A DNA stretch of 64,000 bases, from NCBI GenBank assembly GCA_964252035.1, contig OZ176202.1; one strand, given 5' to 3'. Both the position numbers and the translations under genes were made by a program. Of the stretch, positions 34,791-44,347 are shown piece by piece. Position 1 is the first letter of the stretch, and the number at the start of each line of letters is the position of its first letter. Origin of the DNA: Podarcis erhardii (lineage: Eukaryota). The notes under the pieces are model-generated. The model did not search any database and was not told the origin of the DNA. It saw nothing but the letters and a program-made list of their open reading frames with translations.

Positions 34791-35069
34791 GTGCCAGAGC
34801 AAATGGTTTGTGGATCAAAGCCATTATCTGGCAAAGTGAAAAGAAAATGCTCGGGAATCTTTAAAAAAATTATTGGAGCCGTGCATCTTTGCTTACACAG
34901 AAAGAATAGTGGCTAGCATAACTTTTTGTTTTCTTAAAGTGATACTCCAATATATGCCTACTGTGTATAGATGCAGGAAGAACTTGGGTCTGGCTTTTTC
35001 CTTTAATTGACCTGGCCTCAGACAAAACAGGTTTTTTTAAGTGCTTACTATTGAATTAAAAAAGCATGT

Positions 35070-35831
35070 TGTCAGGGCTGCCCGAGGTCCCAGCTCACAA
35101 AGGACCAACGCCAGGTCATTGTTATATGCAAAAGTCTTTATTGAAGTTCAGTTTCTATTTCAAAGCCGTGGCGCGCAGCTCTACGTCTTAAACTCTAGAC
35201 CGCCGAAGCTCCGTCTGAATCTCCTCCCCCCAGACACCAGTTTAAGACTCTAGCCTTGCTCCACCTCTTCCTTCGCTCCTTTCTCCTCTGGGTCCGCCTG
35301 TCCGCTGGGGTCTCGCCCTTTCTGGACTCTTCTGATGCTGAGTCCCCTGAGTCATCCCCCACCCTCCGGCGGGCTTTAGGACCTGGTTCCCCCTCCGGGC
35401 TACCTGCTGTGCCGCGCGTCTGTACATTTGAACTTGGCGCGCGCGCCCAGCCGGCAACCTTCCTCCTGACCGTTCCCTCGCTCTCCGATGGAGGCGTGGT
35501 CAGCCCTAACTCATCTTCTCTCCCTCCTGGAGGAGACGCTGGCCCTGACACCTGAGATTCTTCCCCCCCACTACACTCTGGTGGGGAAGCTGGTCCTGAT
35601 CTCCAGCAGCTGCTCTGGGAATCCCCGCTGGCCCCTTGCTTCTGGTGCGTCCCCCCTGGAACCCCCCTTGCCCTGGCCATCGGCGCCCCCCTCTGGGAAT
35701 CTTCTGATTCGCTGGAAAGGCTCATGGAATCTCTCGGGCCACTGTCATCTTCTCCCATGCTGCCCTCAGATTCTTCCCCTTCGCTCTCCATTCCCTCTCC
35801 TCCCTGTGCCTCTGCTCCTGAGCCCCTGACA
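35070..35831 (-). mobile_element. Solo LTR (762 bp) of a second Gypsy-type family
   Basis: TGTCAGGG...CCCTGACA inverted termini, perfect 5-bp TSD CATGT (35065-35069 and 35832-35836), AATAAA on - strand at 35142-35137, reading frame open from 35830 to the stop at 35195. Confidence 0.9.
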
Positions 35832-36731
35832 CATGTGGACCAGATTTCTTGTATACCCAGATGTCTTCCATTTACTTAATGTCATCCATCCCATTTATGT
35901 CAGTGGTAGGGATGCCAATGTGAATCATTCACTTTATCCCTGTGGTACATAAAAAACAGTTTTTTATGCATATAAAAACCTGTATTTTGTGAGCTCTTGA
36001 TGCCTTTTGTTTTCAAAATATGCTGGCAAAAGATGTATATTTGTCTTTAAAACCTAGATACAACCAATATTCACCCATATTTCAAAAAGAACTTGTTAAT
36101 CTCCCCATTTAAGCATTCAGCATCACAAAGGGATTTTACCAGATTTTAAAACTTTAATCAAAAGTGCTACTCTAGGCTATACTTTTAAGTATAGACTCTA
36201 CAGGTATTTTGCTCAGTTCAGCTATTGTAAACTTGAGGCACTTCTCATAGAGGTGGTGGGATGGCTTTTCAACTCTTGGTTCATTTCCTCTTGCGTTGAG
36301 TCTATCCACCCTAACAAATGTCCCAAATGGCATAGAAATTTCTGGGCAGTGGGTATGTTTTCCCTTTTAGTTGAGGCAGTTATAGGCATATCAATGGGGC
36401 TTTCACTTCCTAAATTTTTCACTCAAAGCTTGTCAACATGTTGGAACTTTTTACAGGTTGACTAGTTCTTTATAACGTAACAGTTGGCTGTGCTGTTGTA
36501 TATAATGGCAAGCATTATTTGGAAAATTATGAGGCTTTTCTGGGCACCAGAGTATTAGGCCAGTCTCTTCTTTCAGATGTCGCTGAAGGAGTGTCACTAA
36601 AGGAAAAGAGGAGGAAATACATAACGAATCCATAAACTGTAGAGTGAGTAACTATAGCTAGTGCTATTTGTAGAAGGCCATTAGGTTAAAACATGTCAAA
36701 CATGTTTTACGTCCTGATCATGAAGACCTTG

Positions 36732-37127
36732 TGTGATGGGATAGTGAGCTGCTTGTGCGTAAAAGCTTGATCCCTCTGGGGTTTGGCTGGTCATCCAAAC
36801 CGATGCACTAACGGAGCCCCCAAAGCATGACTCCGTCAGTCGCTGGTAGTATCTGACAGTGGGCGTCTACGGAATTTACGCCAACATAAAAGCTCTTTGA
36901 CAGACATGCGCTTTCGAGACTCTCTGCGTGACAGTTTCCGGCGAAGGGTGGGCGTTCCCAACGGGGGTCCCGTTACCTCTCCACTACTCTCACTGGAAGC
37001 ATCCCAGAGCCTCCCCTCCGCTGTGACTCCTGCACTCCCCCTGCTGGTTCCCTCTTCTACTGCAGATTCTCTCCTATTCTCCTGTAGCCTGTCCACCACC
37101 TGTCTCTCCGATGGCAGTTCCCTGACA
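36732..37127 (-). repeat. 3' LTR (396 bp); U3 and the start of R are protein coding
   Basis: Direct repeat of 41825-42220; contains the last 96 codons and the stop of pol. Confidence 0.97.
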
Positions 37128-40100
37128 TCCACCTCCCCCCCAGGGCCCCCTTCACCCCCTCCCGCCTCCTCTCCCACTGGCGGTGAGGGCGGAAAGCCCC
37201 TGAAGGAACTCTCCTCGTCGTCCGAGGATTCTAACACTTCCGGCCACGGCGTACCGTCTCTCTCCCCGTCTTCCTCTTCTTCGTCGGAGTCGGCTTCTTC
37301 ACCCACCCCTGACTCTGGGAACCCTTCAAACTCTCCTTCCTCATCGGTGGTCCCAAAGTGTTCCCTTCTAAATCGAGCCACGGGTTGCGGTTTTCTTGGG
37401 AAACGCTGATGAAATGTTTCTATTAAAATCTCGTCATTGACTACCTCTGCTGGTACCCAAGTGTTTTCCGACTCTGCTTCCCCCTCCCATTCTACCAGAT
37501 ATTCCACCTGATTTCCCTTCCACCTGGAATCAATGATTCCTGCCACGTTCATGTCGCGCTCTCTCTCTTCTATCACGGGCGTTTGGGTGGCCTCTCTCTC
37601 ACGCTCCCCCCACTCGCGTCCCTCTCGGTACGGCGACAGTAATGACCTGTGAAATACTGGGTGTAATTTCATGTGACTGGGCAGCCTGAGTTTGAATGCC
37701 ACTGGGTTGACCTGCTGTATGACCTCAAAGGGTCCCAATCTTTTGGGCCTCAATTTCTTACTCCCGCCCTTGAACGGTAGCCCTTGGGTGGACAACCACA
37801 CCCGGTCCCCCACCCTTATAGTTTCACCTTCCCTCCTATTTCTGTCTGCTTGCTTCTTATATTCTTCCTTGGCTTTCTCTAAGTTAAGTTGAAGCTGACG
37901 GTGGATCGCCTCCATCTCTTCAAAAAAATATTCCGCCGCCGGCACGCTCCACCTCTCCCCTCCCTCTCCTGGGAATGCCCGGGGGTGACACCCATAATTT
38001 GCCAGGAAGGGACTCATCCCTGTGGACACGTTCTCCGCGTTGTTGTAGGCAAATTCTGCTAGAGGTAACTTATCCACCCAATCATTTTCTCTGTCCTTTA
38101 CATAACACCTCAAGTATTGTTGTAAAACCCCATTTGCCCTTTCCGCTTGCCCATTGGTTTCTGGGTGCCGGGCAGTTGAGAAATTGAGTTCTACGTGCAG
38201 TAAGCTCATAAGTTTCCTCCAGAACCTGGAAGTAAATTGTTTCCCTCTGTCGCTGACCACCCTCAAGGGGGCGCCATGCAACTTGAAAATATGTTCTACA
38301 AACAACTTGGCGGTTTCCTCCGCTGTGACTGCATGTGAACAAGCTATAAAATGACACATCTTGGTTAATTGATCTACCACCACCATGACAGCTGTTTTGC
38401 CTTTGGATTTTGGCAGGTCCGTCATAAAATCTATGGATACTGCCTCCCATGGCCTTTCAGGCGTGGGTAAGGGTTGTAATAGCCCCGCTGGCGCCACCCT
38501 CTCTCCTTTCGCTCGCTGGCACCTGTCGCAACCCCTGACATATTCCCGTACGTCCTCCCTCACCTTGGGCCACCAAAACTCCCTGGTAACCAACCACATG
38601 GTTTTGTGCTGTCCAAAATGTCCCGCTGTGGGGCTGTCATGCAACTGCTTGAGTACTCTGCCCCTCAGTTCCCCGTCGGGTATGTACAGTGCCCCTTTGT
38701 AATACAACGCCCCGTTCTTTTCTTCGAACCCCCCTGTGTTCTCCTCTGTCCTCCGGAGCTCTCTGAGTTTCTCTTGGGCGTATTCATCGTTCTCCGTACC
38801 CTCTATCAGTTCCCTCTGCCCCACCAATGCCGCCCCACACACCCAGCGGTCTTCAGGGATTACATGCCTTGCCTCAGGCGCTCCCTCCCCCTCTAAGTAC
38901 TCAGGTTTCCTGGAAAGAGCGTCCGCCCTCACGTTCTCGGAGCCGGGCACGTAACGAATCTCAAAGTGGAATTTGGAGAACTCCTGGGCCCATCTCACTT
39001 GTCTCTGGTTCAGCACTCGGGCTGTTCTCCAGTATTCCAGATTTTTGTGGTCAGTTCGGACTTGAACCTTGTGCTGCGCCCCAATCAGCAAGTGCCGCCA
39101 TTTCCGGAATGCTTCATGAATGGCGAGCAGTTCTCGGTCGTACACTGTGTAGTTCCTCTCTGATTTGTTCAACTTCCGCGAGAAGAATGCACACGGTCTC
39201 CATTCAGACGTATCTTTTCCCGGCTGGAGAAGAACGGCCCCCACCGCTCGGTCTGACGCGTCAGTCTCCACTCTCATTGGTTGTTGTAGATCCACGTGCA
39301 AGAGTTGCTCTTCCGACGCAAACGCCTGCTTTAAGCGTTCGAACGCTTGTTGCGCTTCTCCCGTCCAAACAAATTTCTTTTTGCTACTAAGACAATCCGT
39401 GATGGGCGCTGTTAAATGGGCAAAGTTTTTGATGAACTTCCTATAGAAGTTTCCGAAGCCCAGGAACCTTTGCACGTCCTTCTTGGTCTTTGGTGTTTTC
39501 CATTCCAGTACCGCTTGAACCTTGCTGGGATCCATGGCCAATCCCTTGTCAGACAACCGGTACCCCAGGAATTCCACCTCCTTGGTATGAAACTGACACT
39601 TCTCCAGTTTCACCCACAGCCGGTTTTCTCGCAGCTTGCTCAGTACCTCTCTTACATCTCGCACATGCTGCTCCTCATTGTCTGAGTACACCAGAACGTC
39701 ATCTAAGAACGCTACGCAGTTCTTGTAGAGCAGTGGCCCCAGGACGTGATTCATGAATGATTGAAAACAGGCGGAGCCCCCTTGTAATCCGAAAGGCATA
39801 ACGGTGTACTCAAAGGCCCCCAAGGGGGTGAACATAGTGGTCTTCCACTCATCCCCCTTTCTCACACGTATCAAGTTATATGCCCCCCTAAGGTCCAGCT
39901 TGGTAAAAATTTTCCCTTTTCTCACCCGTGTTAGAATGTCATCAATTCTGGGCATAGGGAAAGTCACTGGTTCTGACACTGCATTTAGGGCCCTGAAATC
40001 ACATACAAGCCTGGGCTTGCCTGTGTTTTTTTTGTCCACAAAGAACACTGGGCTGCCCCCCACCGCTCGTGACTCTCTGATGAAACCTCGCTTGAGATTC

Positions 40101-40819
40101 TTGTCAATGAACTCCCTTAACTCCTGCATCTCACTGTCTGACATTGCATACAGCTTGCCCACTGGCAATTGTGCTCCTGGGAGTAAGGTAATTTGACAAT
40201 CAAAGGGTCTGTGCGGGGGCAGTTTATCTGCTTCTTTTTCGCTGAATACGTCAAGCAAGTCAGCGTATTGTGGTGGCACCCTCCCTTTGTCCATCACTTC
40301 CATCCCTGCTAGAGTGCCCCTGGCGCCTGCCTGAGCCTCTCCCTCCTTGCAGTGTTCTAGGCAATGTGCTGATCCAAAGGAAACCACTCTCTGATGCCAG
40401 CCTACTAGCGGATCGTGTAGCGCCAGCCAGCTCATACCCAAGATAATAGGAGCTCCTCCCAAGGTGGCTACGTTAAACGCTATCAGTTCGGTGTGTCGTG
40501 CCACCCTCATTATCATTGGTACAGTCTGTTGGCTCACTTCTCCTCCCAACAGCTCCCTCCCATCAATCGTGGTAACCTGCAAAGGCTTACTCAATGGGAT
40601 AGTCTGTATTTGGTGTGCAGCTGCAAACTCTTTGCTCATGAAATTACATGAGCTACCTGAATCCAATAGCGCCTTTATCTTCAGTGGGTGTCCGTTTGCC
40701 AGTTCCAGCAACACCTCTATCACAAGCGCTGGTCTTGGAGGTTCCGGCGTGGGCACATTCATTACTCCCTGGCCTGGCTGCTGTGCCCTGATGTTGGCAA
40801 CCAGGCGTTGGCTTTTACT
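36836..40819 (-). CDS. Pol: aspartic protease, RT, RNase H, integrase, chromodomain, acidic tail and LTR-encoded basic tail (in the -1 frame relative to gag)
   Basis: LLDSG (40655-40663); RT FLDD (39698-39709); RNase H DAS/ELLA/TDH; integrase H-x6-H...CDRC, DFMTDL/DRG/ERAN and GPF; chromodomain 37398-37552; no stop up to 36836. Start uncertain (frameshift near 40813-40819, or AUG at 40762). Confidence 0.96.
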   Translation of the reverse strand, partial: SKSQRLVANIRAQQPGQGVMNVPTPEPPRPALVIEVLLELANGHPLKIKALLDSGSSCNFMSKEFAAAHQIQTIPLSKPLQVTTIDGRELLGGEVSQQTVPMIMRVARHTELIAFNVATLGGAPIILGMSWLALHDPLVGWHQRVVSFGSAHCLEHCKEGEAQAGARGTLAGMEVMDKGRVPPQYADLLDVFSEKEADKLPPHRPFDCQITLLPGAQLPVGKLYAMSDSEMQELREFIDKNLKRGFIRESRAVGGSPVFFVDKKNTGKPRLVCDFRALNAVSEPVTFPMPRIDDILTRVRKGKIFTKLDLRGAYNLIRVRKGDEWKTTMFTPLGAFEYTVMPFGLQGGSACFQSFMNHVLGPLLYKNCVAFLDDVLVYSDNEEQHVRDVREVLSKLRENRLWVKLEKCQFHTKEVEFLGYRLSDKGLAMDPSKVQAVLEWKTPKTKKDVQRFLGFGNFYRKFIKNFAHLTAPITDCLSSKKKFVWTGEAQQAFERLKQAFASEEQLLHVDLQQPMRVETDASDRAVGAVLLQPGKDTSEWRPCAFFSRKLNKSERNYTVYDRELLAIHEAFRKWRHLLIGAQHKVQVRTDHKNLEYWRTARVLNQRQVRWAQEFSKFHFEIRYVPGSENVRADALSRKPEYLEGEGAPEARHVIPEDRWVCGAALVGQRELIEGTENDEYAQEKLRELRRTEENTGGFEEKNGALYYKGALYIPDGELRGRVLKQLHDSPTAGHFGQHKTMWLVTREFWWPKVREDVREYVRGCDRCQRAKGERVAPAGLLQPLPTPERPWEAVSIDFMTDLPKSKGKTAVMVVVDQLTKMCHFIACSHAVTAEETAKLFVEHIFKLHGAPLRVVSDRGKQFTSRFWRKLMSLLHVELNFSTARHPETNGQAERANGVLQQYLRCYVKDRENDWVDKLPLAEFAYNNAENVSTGMSPFLANYGCHPRAFPGEGGERWSVPAAEYFFEEMEAIHRQLQLNLEKAKEEYKKQADRNRREGETIRVGDRVWLSTQGLPFKGGSKKLRPKRLGPFEVIQQVNPVAFKLRLPSHMKLHPVFHRSLLSPYREGREWGEREREATQTPVIEERERDMNVAGIIDSRWKGNQVEYLVEWEGEAESENTWVPAEVVNDEILIETFHQRFPRKPQPVARFRREHFGTTDEEGEFEGFPESGVGEEADSDEEEEDGERDGTPWPEVLESSDDEESSFRGFPPSPPVGEEAGGGEGGPGGEVDVRELPSERQVVDRLQENRRESAVEEGTSRGSAGVTAEGRLWDASSESSGEVTGPPLGTPTLRRKLSRRESRKRMSVKELLCWRKFRRRPLSDTTSD
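37128..37141 (-). promoter_or_regulatory. Polypurine tract GGGGGGGAGGTGGA
   Basis: Purine-rich run abutting the 3' LTR TG; translated as part of pol (GGEVD). Confidence 0.85.
40751..40819 (-). promoter_or_regulatory. Gag-pol recoding signal: H-type pseudoknot with upstream A-GUA-AAA and embedded UAAUG
   Basis: Stem 1 40806-40797 with 40781-40772 (10 bp, one GU); stem 2 40788-40782 with 40757-40751 (7 bp); 6-nt spacer after the heptamer 40819-40813. Confidence 0.75.
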
Positions 40820-41778
40820 GGCTCCGTGATTTCTTCTTCCTCCTTCCCCCCAACAGTTCCCGCCATCCCTTGCCATTCCTTCCTTTGCGGACAGACTCTG
40901 GCAAAGTGACCTGGCTGTTGGCAGAGATAGCATCTCTTGCCGCTCTTTCCCTCCTTCTTCCGCCCTTCACTGGTGTTTGAAACTGCGCGCGCGCGCGCTG
41001 TTCCAAGTTCCATCGGCTCTGCTGGCGGGAAAGGCTGCTCCGGAATCTCTGGAATGCGGAAGTCCTTCCAACGTTCCCCCTTTCCTTCCCGCTTTTCCAT
41101 AGCTCTAGCTTCCTGGCGTGCGCCAATGGACAGCGCTGATTTAGTCAGCTGATCCATAGACTCCGCCCTAGGCGCCCGGGAAAGTTCATCTTTCACTGCC
41201 GGAGAGAGACCTTCTTCAAACAGCATTTGAATAGGTTCACTAGCAAGGTCCCACCCAAGTCTATGAATCAGCATGGTGAACTCAGTCCAGTACTCACGTA
41301 CAGATCGGCTCCCCTGTTTACACGCCATTAACTGCCTGCGCACCACTCCCTGCTCGATCTCGCTGGAAAACATCAAGTCCATGGCGCGGAAAAACTTCAT
41401 TGTGTCCTTTAAGATTTCATTATTGGCTGCCATCAGGGGCCGAACCCAGTCCCTCGCCCCTCCCTCTAGATGGCCAATCACGTACGCCACTCTAGAGTTC
41501 TCGTCGGGGAAGTCATCAAACAGTAGATTGAGAGCATATTGCATCTCTGTCCTAAAGGCTTGATAGTTCCGGGGATCCCCCCCAAATTTCTGCACCAGTC
41601 CAGGCACCCGTCTGGCAAGTGGGGTGGTTTTCCCCTTATCTGCATCTTGAGCCCTCCTCTCCTCGAGCCTCGCCGTTTGCAGTGCCAGCTGGACCTCCAA
41701 CGCCCTGTACCTTTGTTCCAGGCTTGGATCTGCGCCAGCTCCCGCTCCTGCTCCTCCGGTTCCGGATGGTTCGCTCAT
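40762..41778 (-). CDS. Gag (338 aa; PEG10/sushi-like capsid region, CCHC zinc knuckle)
   Basis: ATG at 41778 (gcatcATG); coiled-coil N-terminus, FGGDPRNYQAFR capsid-like segment, CYLCQQPGHFARVC knuckle; TAA at 40764-40762. Confidence 0.95.
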   Translation of the reverse strand: MSEPSGTGGAGAGAGADPSLEQRYRALEVQLALQTARLEERRAQDADKGKTTPLARRVPGLVQKFGGDPRNYQAFRTEMQYALNLLFDDFPDENSRVAYVIGHLEGGARDWVRPLMAANNEILKDTMKFFRAMDLMFSSEIEQGVVRRQLMACKQGSRSVREYWTEFTMLIHRLGWDLASEPIQMLFEEGLSPAVKDELSRAPRAESMDQLTKSALSIGARQEARAMEKREGKGERWKDFRIPEIPEQPFPPAEPMELGTARARAVSNTSEGRKKEGKSGKRCYLCQQPGHFARVCPQRKEWQGMAGTVGGKEEEEITEPVKANAWLPTSGHSSQARE

Positions 41779-41811
41779 GATGCCTTCTGCTTGCACAAGC
41801 TGCTTTCAAAG

Positions 41812-41821
41812 ACTGTCAGAT
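41812..41821 (-). promoter_or_regulatory. Self-priming type primer-binding site (ATCTGACAGT)
   Basis: No TGG/tRNA-type PBS after the 5' LTR; perfect 10-nt complement ACTGTCAGAT lies in the 5' LTR at 41953-41944. Confidence 0.75.
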
Positions 41822-41824
41822 TGC

Positions 41825-42220
41825 TGTGATGGGATAGTGAGCTGCTTGTGCGTAAAAGCTTGATCCCTCTGGGGTTTGGCTGGTCATCCAAACCGATGCA
41901 CTAACGGAGCCCCCAAAGCATGACTCCGTCAGTCGCTGGTAGTATCTGACAGTGGGCGTCTACGGAATTTACGCCAACATAAAAGCTCTTTGACAGACAT
42001 GCGCTTTCGAGACTCTCTGCGTGACAGTTTCCGGCGAAGGGTGGGCGTTCCCAACGGGGGTCCCGTTACCTCTCCACTACTCTCACTGGAAGCATCCCAG
42101 AGCCTCCCCTCCGCTGTGACTCCTGCACTCCCCCTGCTGGTTCCCTCTTCTACTGCAGATTCTCTCCTATTCTCCTGTAGCCTGTCCACCACCTGTCTCT
42201 CCGATGGCAGTTCCCTGACA
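41825..42220 (-). repeat. 5' LTR (396 bp)
   Basis: TGTCAGGG...CCCATCACA on the - strand; no difference from 36732-37127 by eye. Confidence 0.97.
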
Positions 42221-42575
42221 CCTTGATTTGGACATAAGCTTGTTACAAAACTGGTTTTTGAATACATGTGCTTGGGATCACAGCGTATCTTTACTAACTA
42301 TCTTGGCTTCTAGCAATGTACTGATGCATCAGCTTACTAAAATAAACATACGATTATCTCAGTAAAGTTTTTCAATGGGAGATTTTATTTAATGAAGGAA
42401 AGCGGGTTCTCCTTCGTTAATGAACCCACAGAATCGGAGGGGAGAGTCAGGTCAAAAAGTCATATTAAAGTTGTTCAAAAATTCACATTGAAACACACAA
42501 ACCAACAATGACATCAGTTCTAAATACACTTTCCCAGGAACATATCTGACCCAAAGAATCATGATAACCCTACAG

Positions 42576-42747: not shown

Positions 42748-42943
42748 CTCTTTAGGAATGGACCACATTAATTCAGTGTTCCTAAGCATCAGTAAATGCT
42801 GATAGTAGATGTAGTAGTAGAATTAGTAATTTTTCTTATTATTTTCCATGTTATTTTTAGATTGTTGAGATGGACAAAGGAAATTTGCCCCTATTCTAAA
42901 TTTCCTTGTTTTTTGTTTGTTTTGTTTTTTGTGGCTCTTGCAG

Positions 42944-44347
42944 AACTCGATCAGGCACAACTTGTCTCTTCATAGTCGATTCATCAGGGTACAGAATGAA
43001 GGAACTGGGAAAAGTTCGTGGTGGATGATCAACCCTGACGGTGGGAAAGGTGGGAAAGCGCCACGGAGACGTGCTGTTTCGATGGATAACAGCAACAAGT
43101 ACACCAAGAGCCGAGGACGAGCAGCTAAGAAGAAGGCAGCACTACAAGCTGCACAGGAAACAAGCGAAGACAGCCCCTCCCAGCTCTCCAAGTGGCCAGG
43201 TAGCCCAACTTCACGCAGCAGCGATGAGCTAGACGCCTGGACAGATTTCCGGTCTCGTACAAATTCAAATGCCAGTACAATAAGTGGCCGCTTGTCACCA
43301 ATACTGGCCAGCACTGAGCTAGATGAGGTTCAGGATGATGATGCTCCACTTTCCCCTATGCTGTATAGTAGTCCACCCAGCATGTCTCCCTCAGTAAATA
43401 AACCTGGCAATGTTGAGCTGCCAAGGTTGACTGATATGGCGGGCACCATGAACTTGAACGATGGTCTGACAGACAATCTTATGGATGATCTTTTGGACAA
43501 TATAACCCTCCCCTCTTCCCAGCAGTCGCCCACAGGGGGACTCATGCAAAGAAGCTCAAGTTTTCCATACGGCTCCAAAGGTTCAGGTCTTGGTTCACCA
43601 TCGAGTAGTTTCAACAACGCTGTGTTTGGACCATCATCACTGAATTCCCTCCGTCAGTCTCCCATGCAAACCATCCAAGAGAACAAGCAAGCTACATTTT
43701 CTTCCATTTCGCATTACAATAACCAAACACTGCAGGATCTGCTGGCTTCGGATTCGCATAGCCACAGCGATGTCATGATGACCCAGTCTGATCCACTCAT
43801 GTCACAAGCTAGCACAGCTGTGTCTGCCCATAACGTACGCAGGAATATTATGCTCCGGAATGATCCCATGATGTCGTTTGCTGCCCAGCCAAGTCAGGGG
43901 AGTTTGGTCAACCAGAATCTGCTCCACCACCAGCACCAGTCCCAGAATTCCTCTCTCGGTGGCAGTCGTGCCTTGTCGAATTCCGTCGGTACTATGGGCT
44001 TAAGTGACACAAGCAACGTTGGGTCGACAAAACACCAGCAACAGTCACCTGCCAACCAGTCTATGCAATCGCTTTCTGACTCACTCTCAGGCTCTTCTTT
44101 GTACTCCAGCAGTGTGAGCCTTCCAGTCATGGGGCATGATAAATTCCCCAGTGATTTGGACCTGGATATTTTCAACGGGAGCTTGGAATGTGATATGGAG
44201 TCCATTATCCGCAGCGAACTCATGGATGCAGATGGGTTGGATTTTAACTTTGATTCCCTCATCTCAGCCCAGAATGTTGTCACTCTGAATGTGGGAAACT
44301 TCACTGGTGCTAAGCAAGCTTCGTCACAGAGTTGGGTTCCAGGCTAA
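42944..44347 (+). CDS. FOXO3: Forkhead box O3, last coding exon (C-terminal part of forkhead domain through the transactivation domain)
   Basis: Polypyrimidine tract + CAG acceptor at 42941-42943, phase 0, then NSIRHNLSLHSRF...; Akt motifs RRRAVSMD and RSRTNSNA, QRSSSF, C-terminal DLDLDIFNGSLECDMESIIRSELMD and SQSWVPG end match FOXO3 rather than FOXO1/4/6. The first 9 residues of the ORF-track protein (42917-42943) are intronic. Confidence 0.98.
   Translation, partial: NSIRHNLSLHSRFIRVQNEGTGKSSWWMINPDGGKGGKAPRRRAVSMDNSNKYTKSRGRAAKKKAALQAAQETSEDSPSQLSKWPGSPTSRSSDELDAWTDFRSRTNSNASTISGRLSPILASTELDEVQDDDAPLSPMLYSSPPSMSPSVNKPGNVELPRLTDMAGTMNLNDGLTDNLMDDLLDNITLPSSQQSPTGGLMQRSSSFPYGSKGSGLGSPSSSFNNAVFGPSSLNSLRQSPMQTIQENKQATFSSISHYNNQTLQDLLASDSHSHSDVMMTQSDPLMSQASTAVSAHNVRRNIMLRNDPMMSFAAQPSQGSLVNQNLLHHQHQSQNSSLGGSRALSNSVGTMGLSDTSNVGSTKHQQQSPANQSMQSLSDSLSGSSLYSSSVSLPVMGHDKFPSDLDLDIFNGSLECDMESIIRSELMDADGLDFNFDSLISAQNVVTLNVGNFTGAKQASSQSWVPG

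Follow-up and report, generated by a model that had tools for sequence, protein, structure and literature searches.

The window analysed here is a stretch of 64,000 nucleotides from Podarcis erhardii (GenBank assembly GCA_964252035.1, contig OZ176202.1). Two LTR retrotransposon insertions lie close together on its minus strand. The larger one, termed family A, is a full-length Ty3/Gypsy chromovirus with the following layout:

36732-42220, minus strand: full-length element, with the target-site duplication CAAGG at 36727-36731 and 42221-42225
36732-37127, minus strand: 3' LTR, 396 bp, 100% identical to the 5' LTR (41825-42220)
40762-41796, minus strand: Gag
36836-40933, minus strand: Pol open reading frame (ORF), 1365 amino acids, from the ORF list and a Pfam scan
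37403-37546, minus strand: chromodomain, Pol residues 1130-1177 (PF00385, E=1.6e-9)
37193-37330, minus strand: acidic linker with two FxGF motifs, FEGF (37319-37330) and FRGF (37193-37204), upstream of the LTR
37128-37150, minus strand: polypurine tract, within the coding sequence as a Gly-rich stretch
36839-37126, minus strand: last 96 Pol codons, encoded by the LTR, with the stop codon at 36836-36838
36881-36955, minus strand: basic/Trp motif, LTR nucleotides 173-247, corresponding to -95 to -21 of the putative start site
36885-36892, minus strand: TATA-like CTTTTATG in Leu-Leu-Cys codons, its TTA starting 29 nt before the self-primer
36851-36860, minus strand: ACTGTCAGAT, putative self-primer and start of R, with its 5' LTR copy at 41944-41953
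41812-41821, minus strand: putative primer-binding site for self-priming, covering nt 4-13 behind the 5' LTR

Along the family-A Pol the Pfam domains follow each other in the order RVP_2, RVT_1, RT_RNaseH, Integrase_H2C2, rve, SH3_Tf2-1 and Chromo, and it is this succession of protease, reverse transcriptase, RNase H and integrase with a C-terminal chromodomain that assigns the element to the Ty3/Gypsy chromoviruses. The chromodomain is predicted by AlphaFold to form three strands and a helix (pLDDT about 80). Pol continues past this domain through the acidic linker, the polypurine tract and the LTR end TGTCAGGG into 96 codons of the 3' LTR.

The second insertion is a solo LTR of a different family, termed family B:

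35070-35831, minus strand: solo LTR, 762 bp, with the ends TGTCAGGG...CCCTGACA
35832-35836 and 35065-35069, minus strand: upstream and downstream copies of its 5-bp target-site duplication ACATG
35198-35830, minus strand: LTR-encoded ORF, 211 codons from LTR base 2, with the stop codon at 35195-35197
35237-35311, minus strand: basic/Trp motif, LTR nucleotides 521-595, corresponding to -95 to -21 of the putative start site
35242-35245, minus strand: TATA-like TTAA within the motif's Leu-Asn codons, 29 nt ahead of the self-primer
35206-35216, minus strand: self-primer homologue AGACGGAGCTT, putative start of R, matching the primers of the related loci L001, L003 and L005
35137-35142, minus strand: AATAAA polyadenylation signal, invariant in an alignment of 10 copies

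Both families have LTRs with TG...CA ends and are flanked by 5-bp target duplications, CAAGG in family A and ACATG in family B. An earlier reading of the window from its letters alone (the sequence-only reading) had stated that the two LTRs are open in one phase for 211 and 96 codons, which was confirmed, the frame running from base 2 in both. A Pfam scan of the solo-LTR ORF matched no family. The solo LTR and the 3' end of the family-A element share the same orientation and are 900 bp apart, with the solo LTR downstream. The ORF list also contains a FOXO-type exon at 42917-44347, and both LTR insertions look as if they lie inside a FOXO3 intron, antisense to this exon.

A search with the solo-LTR ORF yielded six relatives, whose sources are Podarcis lilfordi and sequencing-run assemblies. 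One locus, L001 from P. lilfordi, represents a full-length parent in a decayed state; it has LTRs of family B as well as gag, pol and a chromodomain. On contig L006, a single ORF of 415 residues (P0025) extends from the chromodomain across a linker and the polypurine tract, which is read as Gly-rich codons, down to where the LTR tail ends, and the polypurine tract lies inside the coding sequence in L001 as well as in L006. The continuation of the gag-pol frame past the polypurine tract into the 3' LTR is therefore seen in family A and in family B (P0025/L006). Since the frame of L006 is unbroken from the chromodomain into the LTR, the solo-LTR ORF is the orphaned C-terminus of a parental Pol, just as the sequence-only reading had proposed; its further expectation, a parent lacking a pol stop before the polypurine tract, is borne out by P0025/L006.

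The Pol of L001 is 60% identical to that of family A over 733 amino acids, and the chromodomain region of family B is 36% identical to its family-A counterpart. Judged by these comparisons, families A and B are sister lineages. Because the site at which Pol, polypurine tract and LTR end meet is homologous in the two, they also share their reading phase: the LTR end TGTCAGGG is itself read through by Pol, which sets a phase common to both. In family A, the tail is kept at 65-69% identity in three Podarcis muralis Pol proteins (P0001-P0003), one of which contains an in-frame insertion of 19 residues in its tail, and the last ~50 residues are the best conserved portion in this comparison. No family-A LTR was present among the fetched family-B loci.

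In protein and library searches the tails were found in Podarcis data only. Profile searching with the family-B tail against 1.84 billion representative proteins returned only four proteins, all close relatives, and none that would link it to family A or to squamates other than these. When the SH3-chromodomain region was used in a word-based search, chromoviruses from fungi, fish and metagenomes were retrieved, which stop soon after the chromodomain and whose short tails show no convincing similarity to the lizard tails.

The DNA of the relatives (L001-L005) contributed nine further full-length family-B LTRs, 72-79% identical in nucleotide sequence to the copy in the window. Of the ten family-B LTR copies, five have an open frame of 207-217 codons with a common stop position. 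All indels among the open copies are in frame, a count favoured by the fact that these copies were chosen for being open; their low dN/dS is not favoured by this choice. By the Nei-Gojobori method, dN/dS of the family-B tail is 0.21-0.28 in 10 of 10 pairs at a dS of 0.7-1.5, with bootstrap upper limits of at most 0.39, and as inserted copies decay neutrally, these values are upper bounds for the active lineages. The other two sense frames of the family-B LTR give 1.5 and 0.86, and differences at third codon positions are about twice as frequent as those at first and second positions. The dN/dS values cover family B only. For family A the evidence consists of the protein conservation together with frame-keeping indels, those listed for the tail in the high-copy contigs being one 3-nt insertion and paired -1/+1 changes; variants in these contigs fall on 10 third, 7 first and 4 second codon positions, a split which is not significant. 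The LTR ORFs are real coding sequence, and U3 is under selection at the protein level. Frame and motif are likewise kept in further members, five of ten family-B LTRs being open and all three P. muralis relatives of family A retaining the tail.

Along the family-B tail pN/pS varies between 0.23 and 0.55, and several blocks are conserved, the motif among them. Thus, of the earlier proposal that U3 is selected as protein for a short functional module, the selection stands, but its restriction to a short module does not. Codons 125-165 of the family-B LTR (35360-35480, minus strand) have a pS of 0.38 compared with about 0.56-0.70 elsewhere in the tail, and a GC palindrome, GGCGCGCGCGCC, is situated inside this block, which may represent an additional DNA- or RNA-level element within the coding U3.

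A tRNA-type primer-binding site is absent from both families. In the family-A element, positions 41812-41821 (nt 4-13 following the 5' LTR) can pair with ACTGTCAGAT, which is found at LTR position 268. In the family-B elements L001, L003 and L005, 11-12 nt following the 5' LTR (from nt 2 or 3 to nt 13) are exactly complementary to position ~610 of the element's own LTR, and the pairs carry compensatory changes (AGATGGAGCTT in L001, AGAGGGGACTTA in L003 and AGACGGGTCTT in L005). This arrangement, with the 5' end of the transcript as the primer, has been described for self-priming Tf1/sushi elements (PMC6317226). The self-primer complementarity of 10-12 nt, found in one family-A and three family-B elements, would place a putative transcript 5' end, deduced from DNA rather than from RNA, and suggests that transcription starts at the self-primer, within the Pol coding sequence. 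If the primer is taken as the start of R, U3 would be coding over its whole length (267 nt for family A, about 615 nt for family B), and the Pol stop would lie roughly 10-22 nt inside R. In family B, an invariant AATAAA comes about 75 nt later.

As DNA, the two LTRs cannot be aligned, in agreement with what had been noted at the outset: blastn at word size 7 detects no match between them, and a repeat finder returns only one stretch of 27 nt with 74% identity. Their translations, however, share the basic/Trp motif at the positions given before. The peptides encoded by 35311-35237 in family B and 36955-36881 in family A align without gaps with 12 of 25 residues identical, and BLASTP of the pair gives E=5e-4. 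Most of these identities fall on residues that are invariant or near-invariant inside each family. Conserved features are an Arg/Lys cluster, a Ser following two basic residues and a hydrophobic/Trp end; the motif is also kept in the family-B proteins P0004-P0007 and P0025. The difference in LTR length resides almost wholly in the linker upstream of the motif, 172 nt in family A vs 520 nt in family B. Measured from the self-primer, the motif begins exactly 95 nt upstream in both families, and its Leu codon TTA begins 29 nt upstream.

Taken by itself, the cross-family similarity is real but statistically marginal. Shuffled controls, by which composition could have been revealed as its source, do not reproduce it: an identity of 12/25 was reached in 1 of 1500 global shuffles and in 2 of 1500 shuffles within 30-residue blocks, whereas the score of the high-scoring segment pair was reached in 2 and 11 of 1500, respectively (shuffle p about 0.001-0.007 overall). 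Given that shuffles rarely reproduce the match, composition alone does not explain it. Searching the six-frame ORFs of the window by HMM was successful in one direction, with the family-A LTR ORF ranking first of 2199 ORFs for the family-B tail HMM, but at E=0.25, and the reciprocal search with the family-A tails did not recover the family-B ORF. In a comparison of four family-A with five family-B tails by hhalign, only the motif block aligns (29 columns, E=2.8e-4).

It is conceivable, then, that both tails are real Pol extensions and that the shared 25 residues are a chance or compositional match between disordered sequences rich in Arg, Lys and Ser, as the hhalign probability of only 41%, the weak and one-sided HMM hit and the 11 block shuffles attaining the score would allow. 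Yet the ungapped alignment falls on the one diagonal, among about 300 possible offsets, that is predicted by the independent self-primer anchor, which makes homology much more credible than the statistics would on their own. The elements are moreover clear homologues with Pol proteins 60% identical, and the identities are mostly those residues that each family keeps (nearly) invariant. A chance match is thus improbable.

A second possibility is that the conservation reflects promoter constraint on the DNA, the open frame being a by-product. The motif does overlap the expected core promoter (-95 to -21), the TTAA is invariant in 10 of 10 family-B LTR copies, a TTA is found at -29 in both families, and the upstream block of codons 125-165 has the lower pS mentioned above. 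Against this, nucleotide identity of the motif between the families is 40% (30 of 75 nt; 10, 13 and 7 at codon positions 1, 2 and 3), third positions agree at the random level of 28% (7 of 25), and identical Arg and Ser residues are encoded by unrelated codon families, AGG vs CGC and AGC vs TCT. Within family B, the synonymous sites of the motif diverge as elsewhere (pS 0.56, equal to the tail average), but its non-synonymous sites do not; hence it is not DNA-level constraint that keeps the motif. As the last motif residues overlap the TATA-like element, part of their conservation may nevertheless be promoter-derived. The constraint on DNA probably holds for the Leu codon only, where the TTA is probably maintained by promoter and protein alike; as an explanation of the whole motif it is very improbable.

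Basic clusters evolve easily and the remaining tails, with linkers of 172 vs 520 nt, do not align, so that both families could also have gained basic C-terminal signals resembling a nuclear localisation signal independently. Such convergence is highly improbable, since the two families agree in the spacing to the TATA-like element, start site and stop, in the phase and in having Thr-Pro and Leu-x-Trp as flanks, and inheritance is simpler for sister elements whose Pol proteins are 60% identical. Least tenable of all is a separate accessory gene of the nef or sag kind, translated on its own: long ORFs do fill U3, and some copies contain an in-frame ATG near the ORF start (the ORF list includes a 198-aa ORF from an ATG), but the frame is continuous with Pol in family A and in the family-B contig L006, the phase follows from the way in which Pol, polypurine tract and LTR are joined, without need of an internal ATG, and no splice or promoter evidence was found.

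The account we prefer takes both LTR families as those of sister Tf1/sushi-like chromoviruses of lacertid lizards with an LTR-encoded integrase tail, and as a whole we assign it a probability of about 0.72. Building on the observed layout, the demonstrated selection and the established parentage of the solo LTR, its structural and evolutionary part is very probable, and the proposed function of the motif considerably less so. According to this account, the gag-pol frame runs without a stop after the integrase chromodomain through the polypurine tract, the LTR end and all of U3 into R. U3 would then have two roles, serving as promoter DNA in the 5' LTR and as coding RNA at the 3' end of the transcript. 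Its product would be an intrinsically disordered C-terminal extension of the integrase, encoded by 96 codons in family A and by about 210 in family B. The protein is under purifying selection, which keeps the frame and several blocks of the tail, and the only block surviving between the families is the basic stretch, followed by the Ser and Leu-x-Trp, just before the transcription start. Here, the last codons of the motif may double as the TATA-like element at -29.

Short linear motifs at disordered C-termini of integrases mediate import or tethering. AlphaFold predicts both tails as disordered apart from a single short helix (pLDDT 55-67) that spans the Leu-x-Trp end, in models of low overall confidence with mean pLDDT values of 46.5 and 51.8. 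As regards a classical nuclear localisation signal, one of the candidate functions put forward in the sequence-only reading beside an arginine anchor and a docking site, the Arg/Lys run conserved in both families agrees with it in composition only. Composition, position and analogy tentatively suggest that the motif serves as an anchor of the integrase for nuclear import and/or for binding to chromatin or nucleic acids, a proposal to which we give somewhat less than even odds. The anchor could consist of a short helix after an Arg/Lys cluster that carries a conserved Ser of the basophilic-kinase type.

The interval between the chromodomain and the polypurine tract contains, in both families, a short hydrophobic stretch, an acidic or Ser/Thr linker of 8-9 residues and FxGF. 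The versions of the latter are FEGF and FRGF in family A (37193-37330, minus strand) and FHGF or FQGF in family B (P0025, residues about 60-82). The pattern of acidic linker and FxGF fits motifs described as being read by the integrase-binding domain of LEDGF/HRP2 (PMC9987994).

Clustered family-B copies are found in P. lilfordi (OX395127, about 3.95 Mb), where positions 7778-14237 of L002 contain four solo LTRs of two subfamilies within 7 kb. Each has its own 5-bp duplication, and all are situated inside one telomere-like array of the CCCTAA type, a clustering that may hint at an insertion preference.

By analogy, the tail as a whole could act as a tethering arm with several motifs, in which the LTR-encoded basic helix would be the anchor to chromatin or nucleic acid, functionally analogous to the CR motif of plant elements, and FxGF with its acidic linkers would mimic the cellular motifs read by LEDGF/HRP2, both together steering integration. 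We regard this extension as unlikely. If it were true, such steering might explain the clustered insertions, namely families A and B 0.9 kb apart and the telomere-type array of P. lilfordi, and the elements would be a retrotransposon counterpart of lentiviral tethering to LEDGF by motif mimicry, encoded partly in promoter DNA.

The layout has its closest precedent in the group A plant chromoviruses of the CRM clade and in Beetle and Bingo of Beta vulgaris, in which gag-pol extends into the 3' LTR and the LTR encodes the CR motif (PMC3059260, PMC3605345). [quoted passage not shown] However, the CR motif of CRM replaces the chromodomain, whereas the lizard elements retain a chromodomain ahead of the polypurine tract and extend it by a longer disordered tail. 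Priming in the lizard elements would be of the Tf1/sushi self-priming type as opposed to tRNA-Met in CRM, and the hosts are vertebrates instead of plants. The likeness is one of layout, irrespective of the sequence of the CR motif. With Tf1/sushi elements the lizard families share the C-terminal chromodomain, the lack of a tRNA-type primer-binding site and the 10-12 nt after the 5' LTR which are complementary to LTR-internal sequence (PMC6317226). They differ in the tail: the distant relatives P0011-P0022 end at the chromodomain or a few dozen residues past it, and none of them has an LTR-encoded tail of 96-210 codons. A literature search returned no description of an LTR-encoded integrase tail in vertebrate chromoviruses, an absence of a match which is not proof of absence; the layout is known from plant centromeric retrotransposons and was not found described for vertebrates.

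HIV nef and MMTV sag are separate genes that overlap U3 and have their own mRNAs. As in these viruses, protein-coding sequence shares the promoter DNA of U3 in the lizard elements, but here the product is the end of Pol itself. Targeting or import peptides at integrase C-termini include the bipartite nuclear localisation signal and AC40-binding tail of Ty1, the targeting domain of Ty5 and the BET-binding tail of MLV. The lizard motif resembles them by type, as a short linear motif in a disordered C-terminus, a likeness drawn independently of their sequences.

U3 is usually regarded as fast-evolving regulatory DNA. With up to about 615 nt of U3 being selected coding sequence, promoter and integrase tail would have to co-evolve, down to a TATA-like element within Leu codons. 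Furthermore, LTR families which cannot be aligned as DNA can be linked via their translated tails, an aid to the classification of solo LTRs in squamate genomes. The presence of the layout in plant centromeric as well as vertebrate chromoviruses suggests that integrases recurrently gain new targeting or import functions through C-terminal modules read from the LTR, and the conserved motif offers a short and defined candidate for how a very young, high-copy lizard retrotransposon reaches chromatin.

Family A is present in very high copy, as judged from contigs of organism A (3445) in runs X1-X6 over window positions 36650-37750, and contigs from sequencing runs place it in four organisms from four studies. 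None of the runs containing family A is on record as RNA. One P. muralis protein annotated as 'vomeronasal type-2 receptor 26-like' (P0010) contains integrase, RNase H and SH3 domains belonging to this family of elements and is probably a gene model fused to an element insertion.
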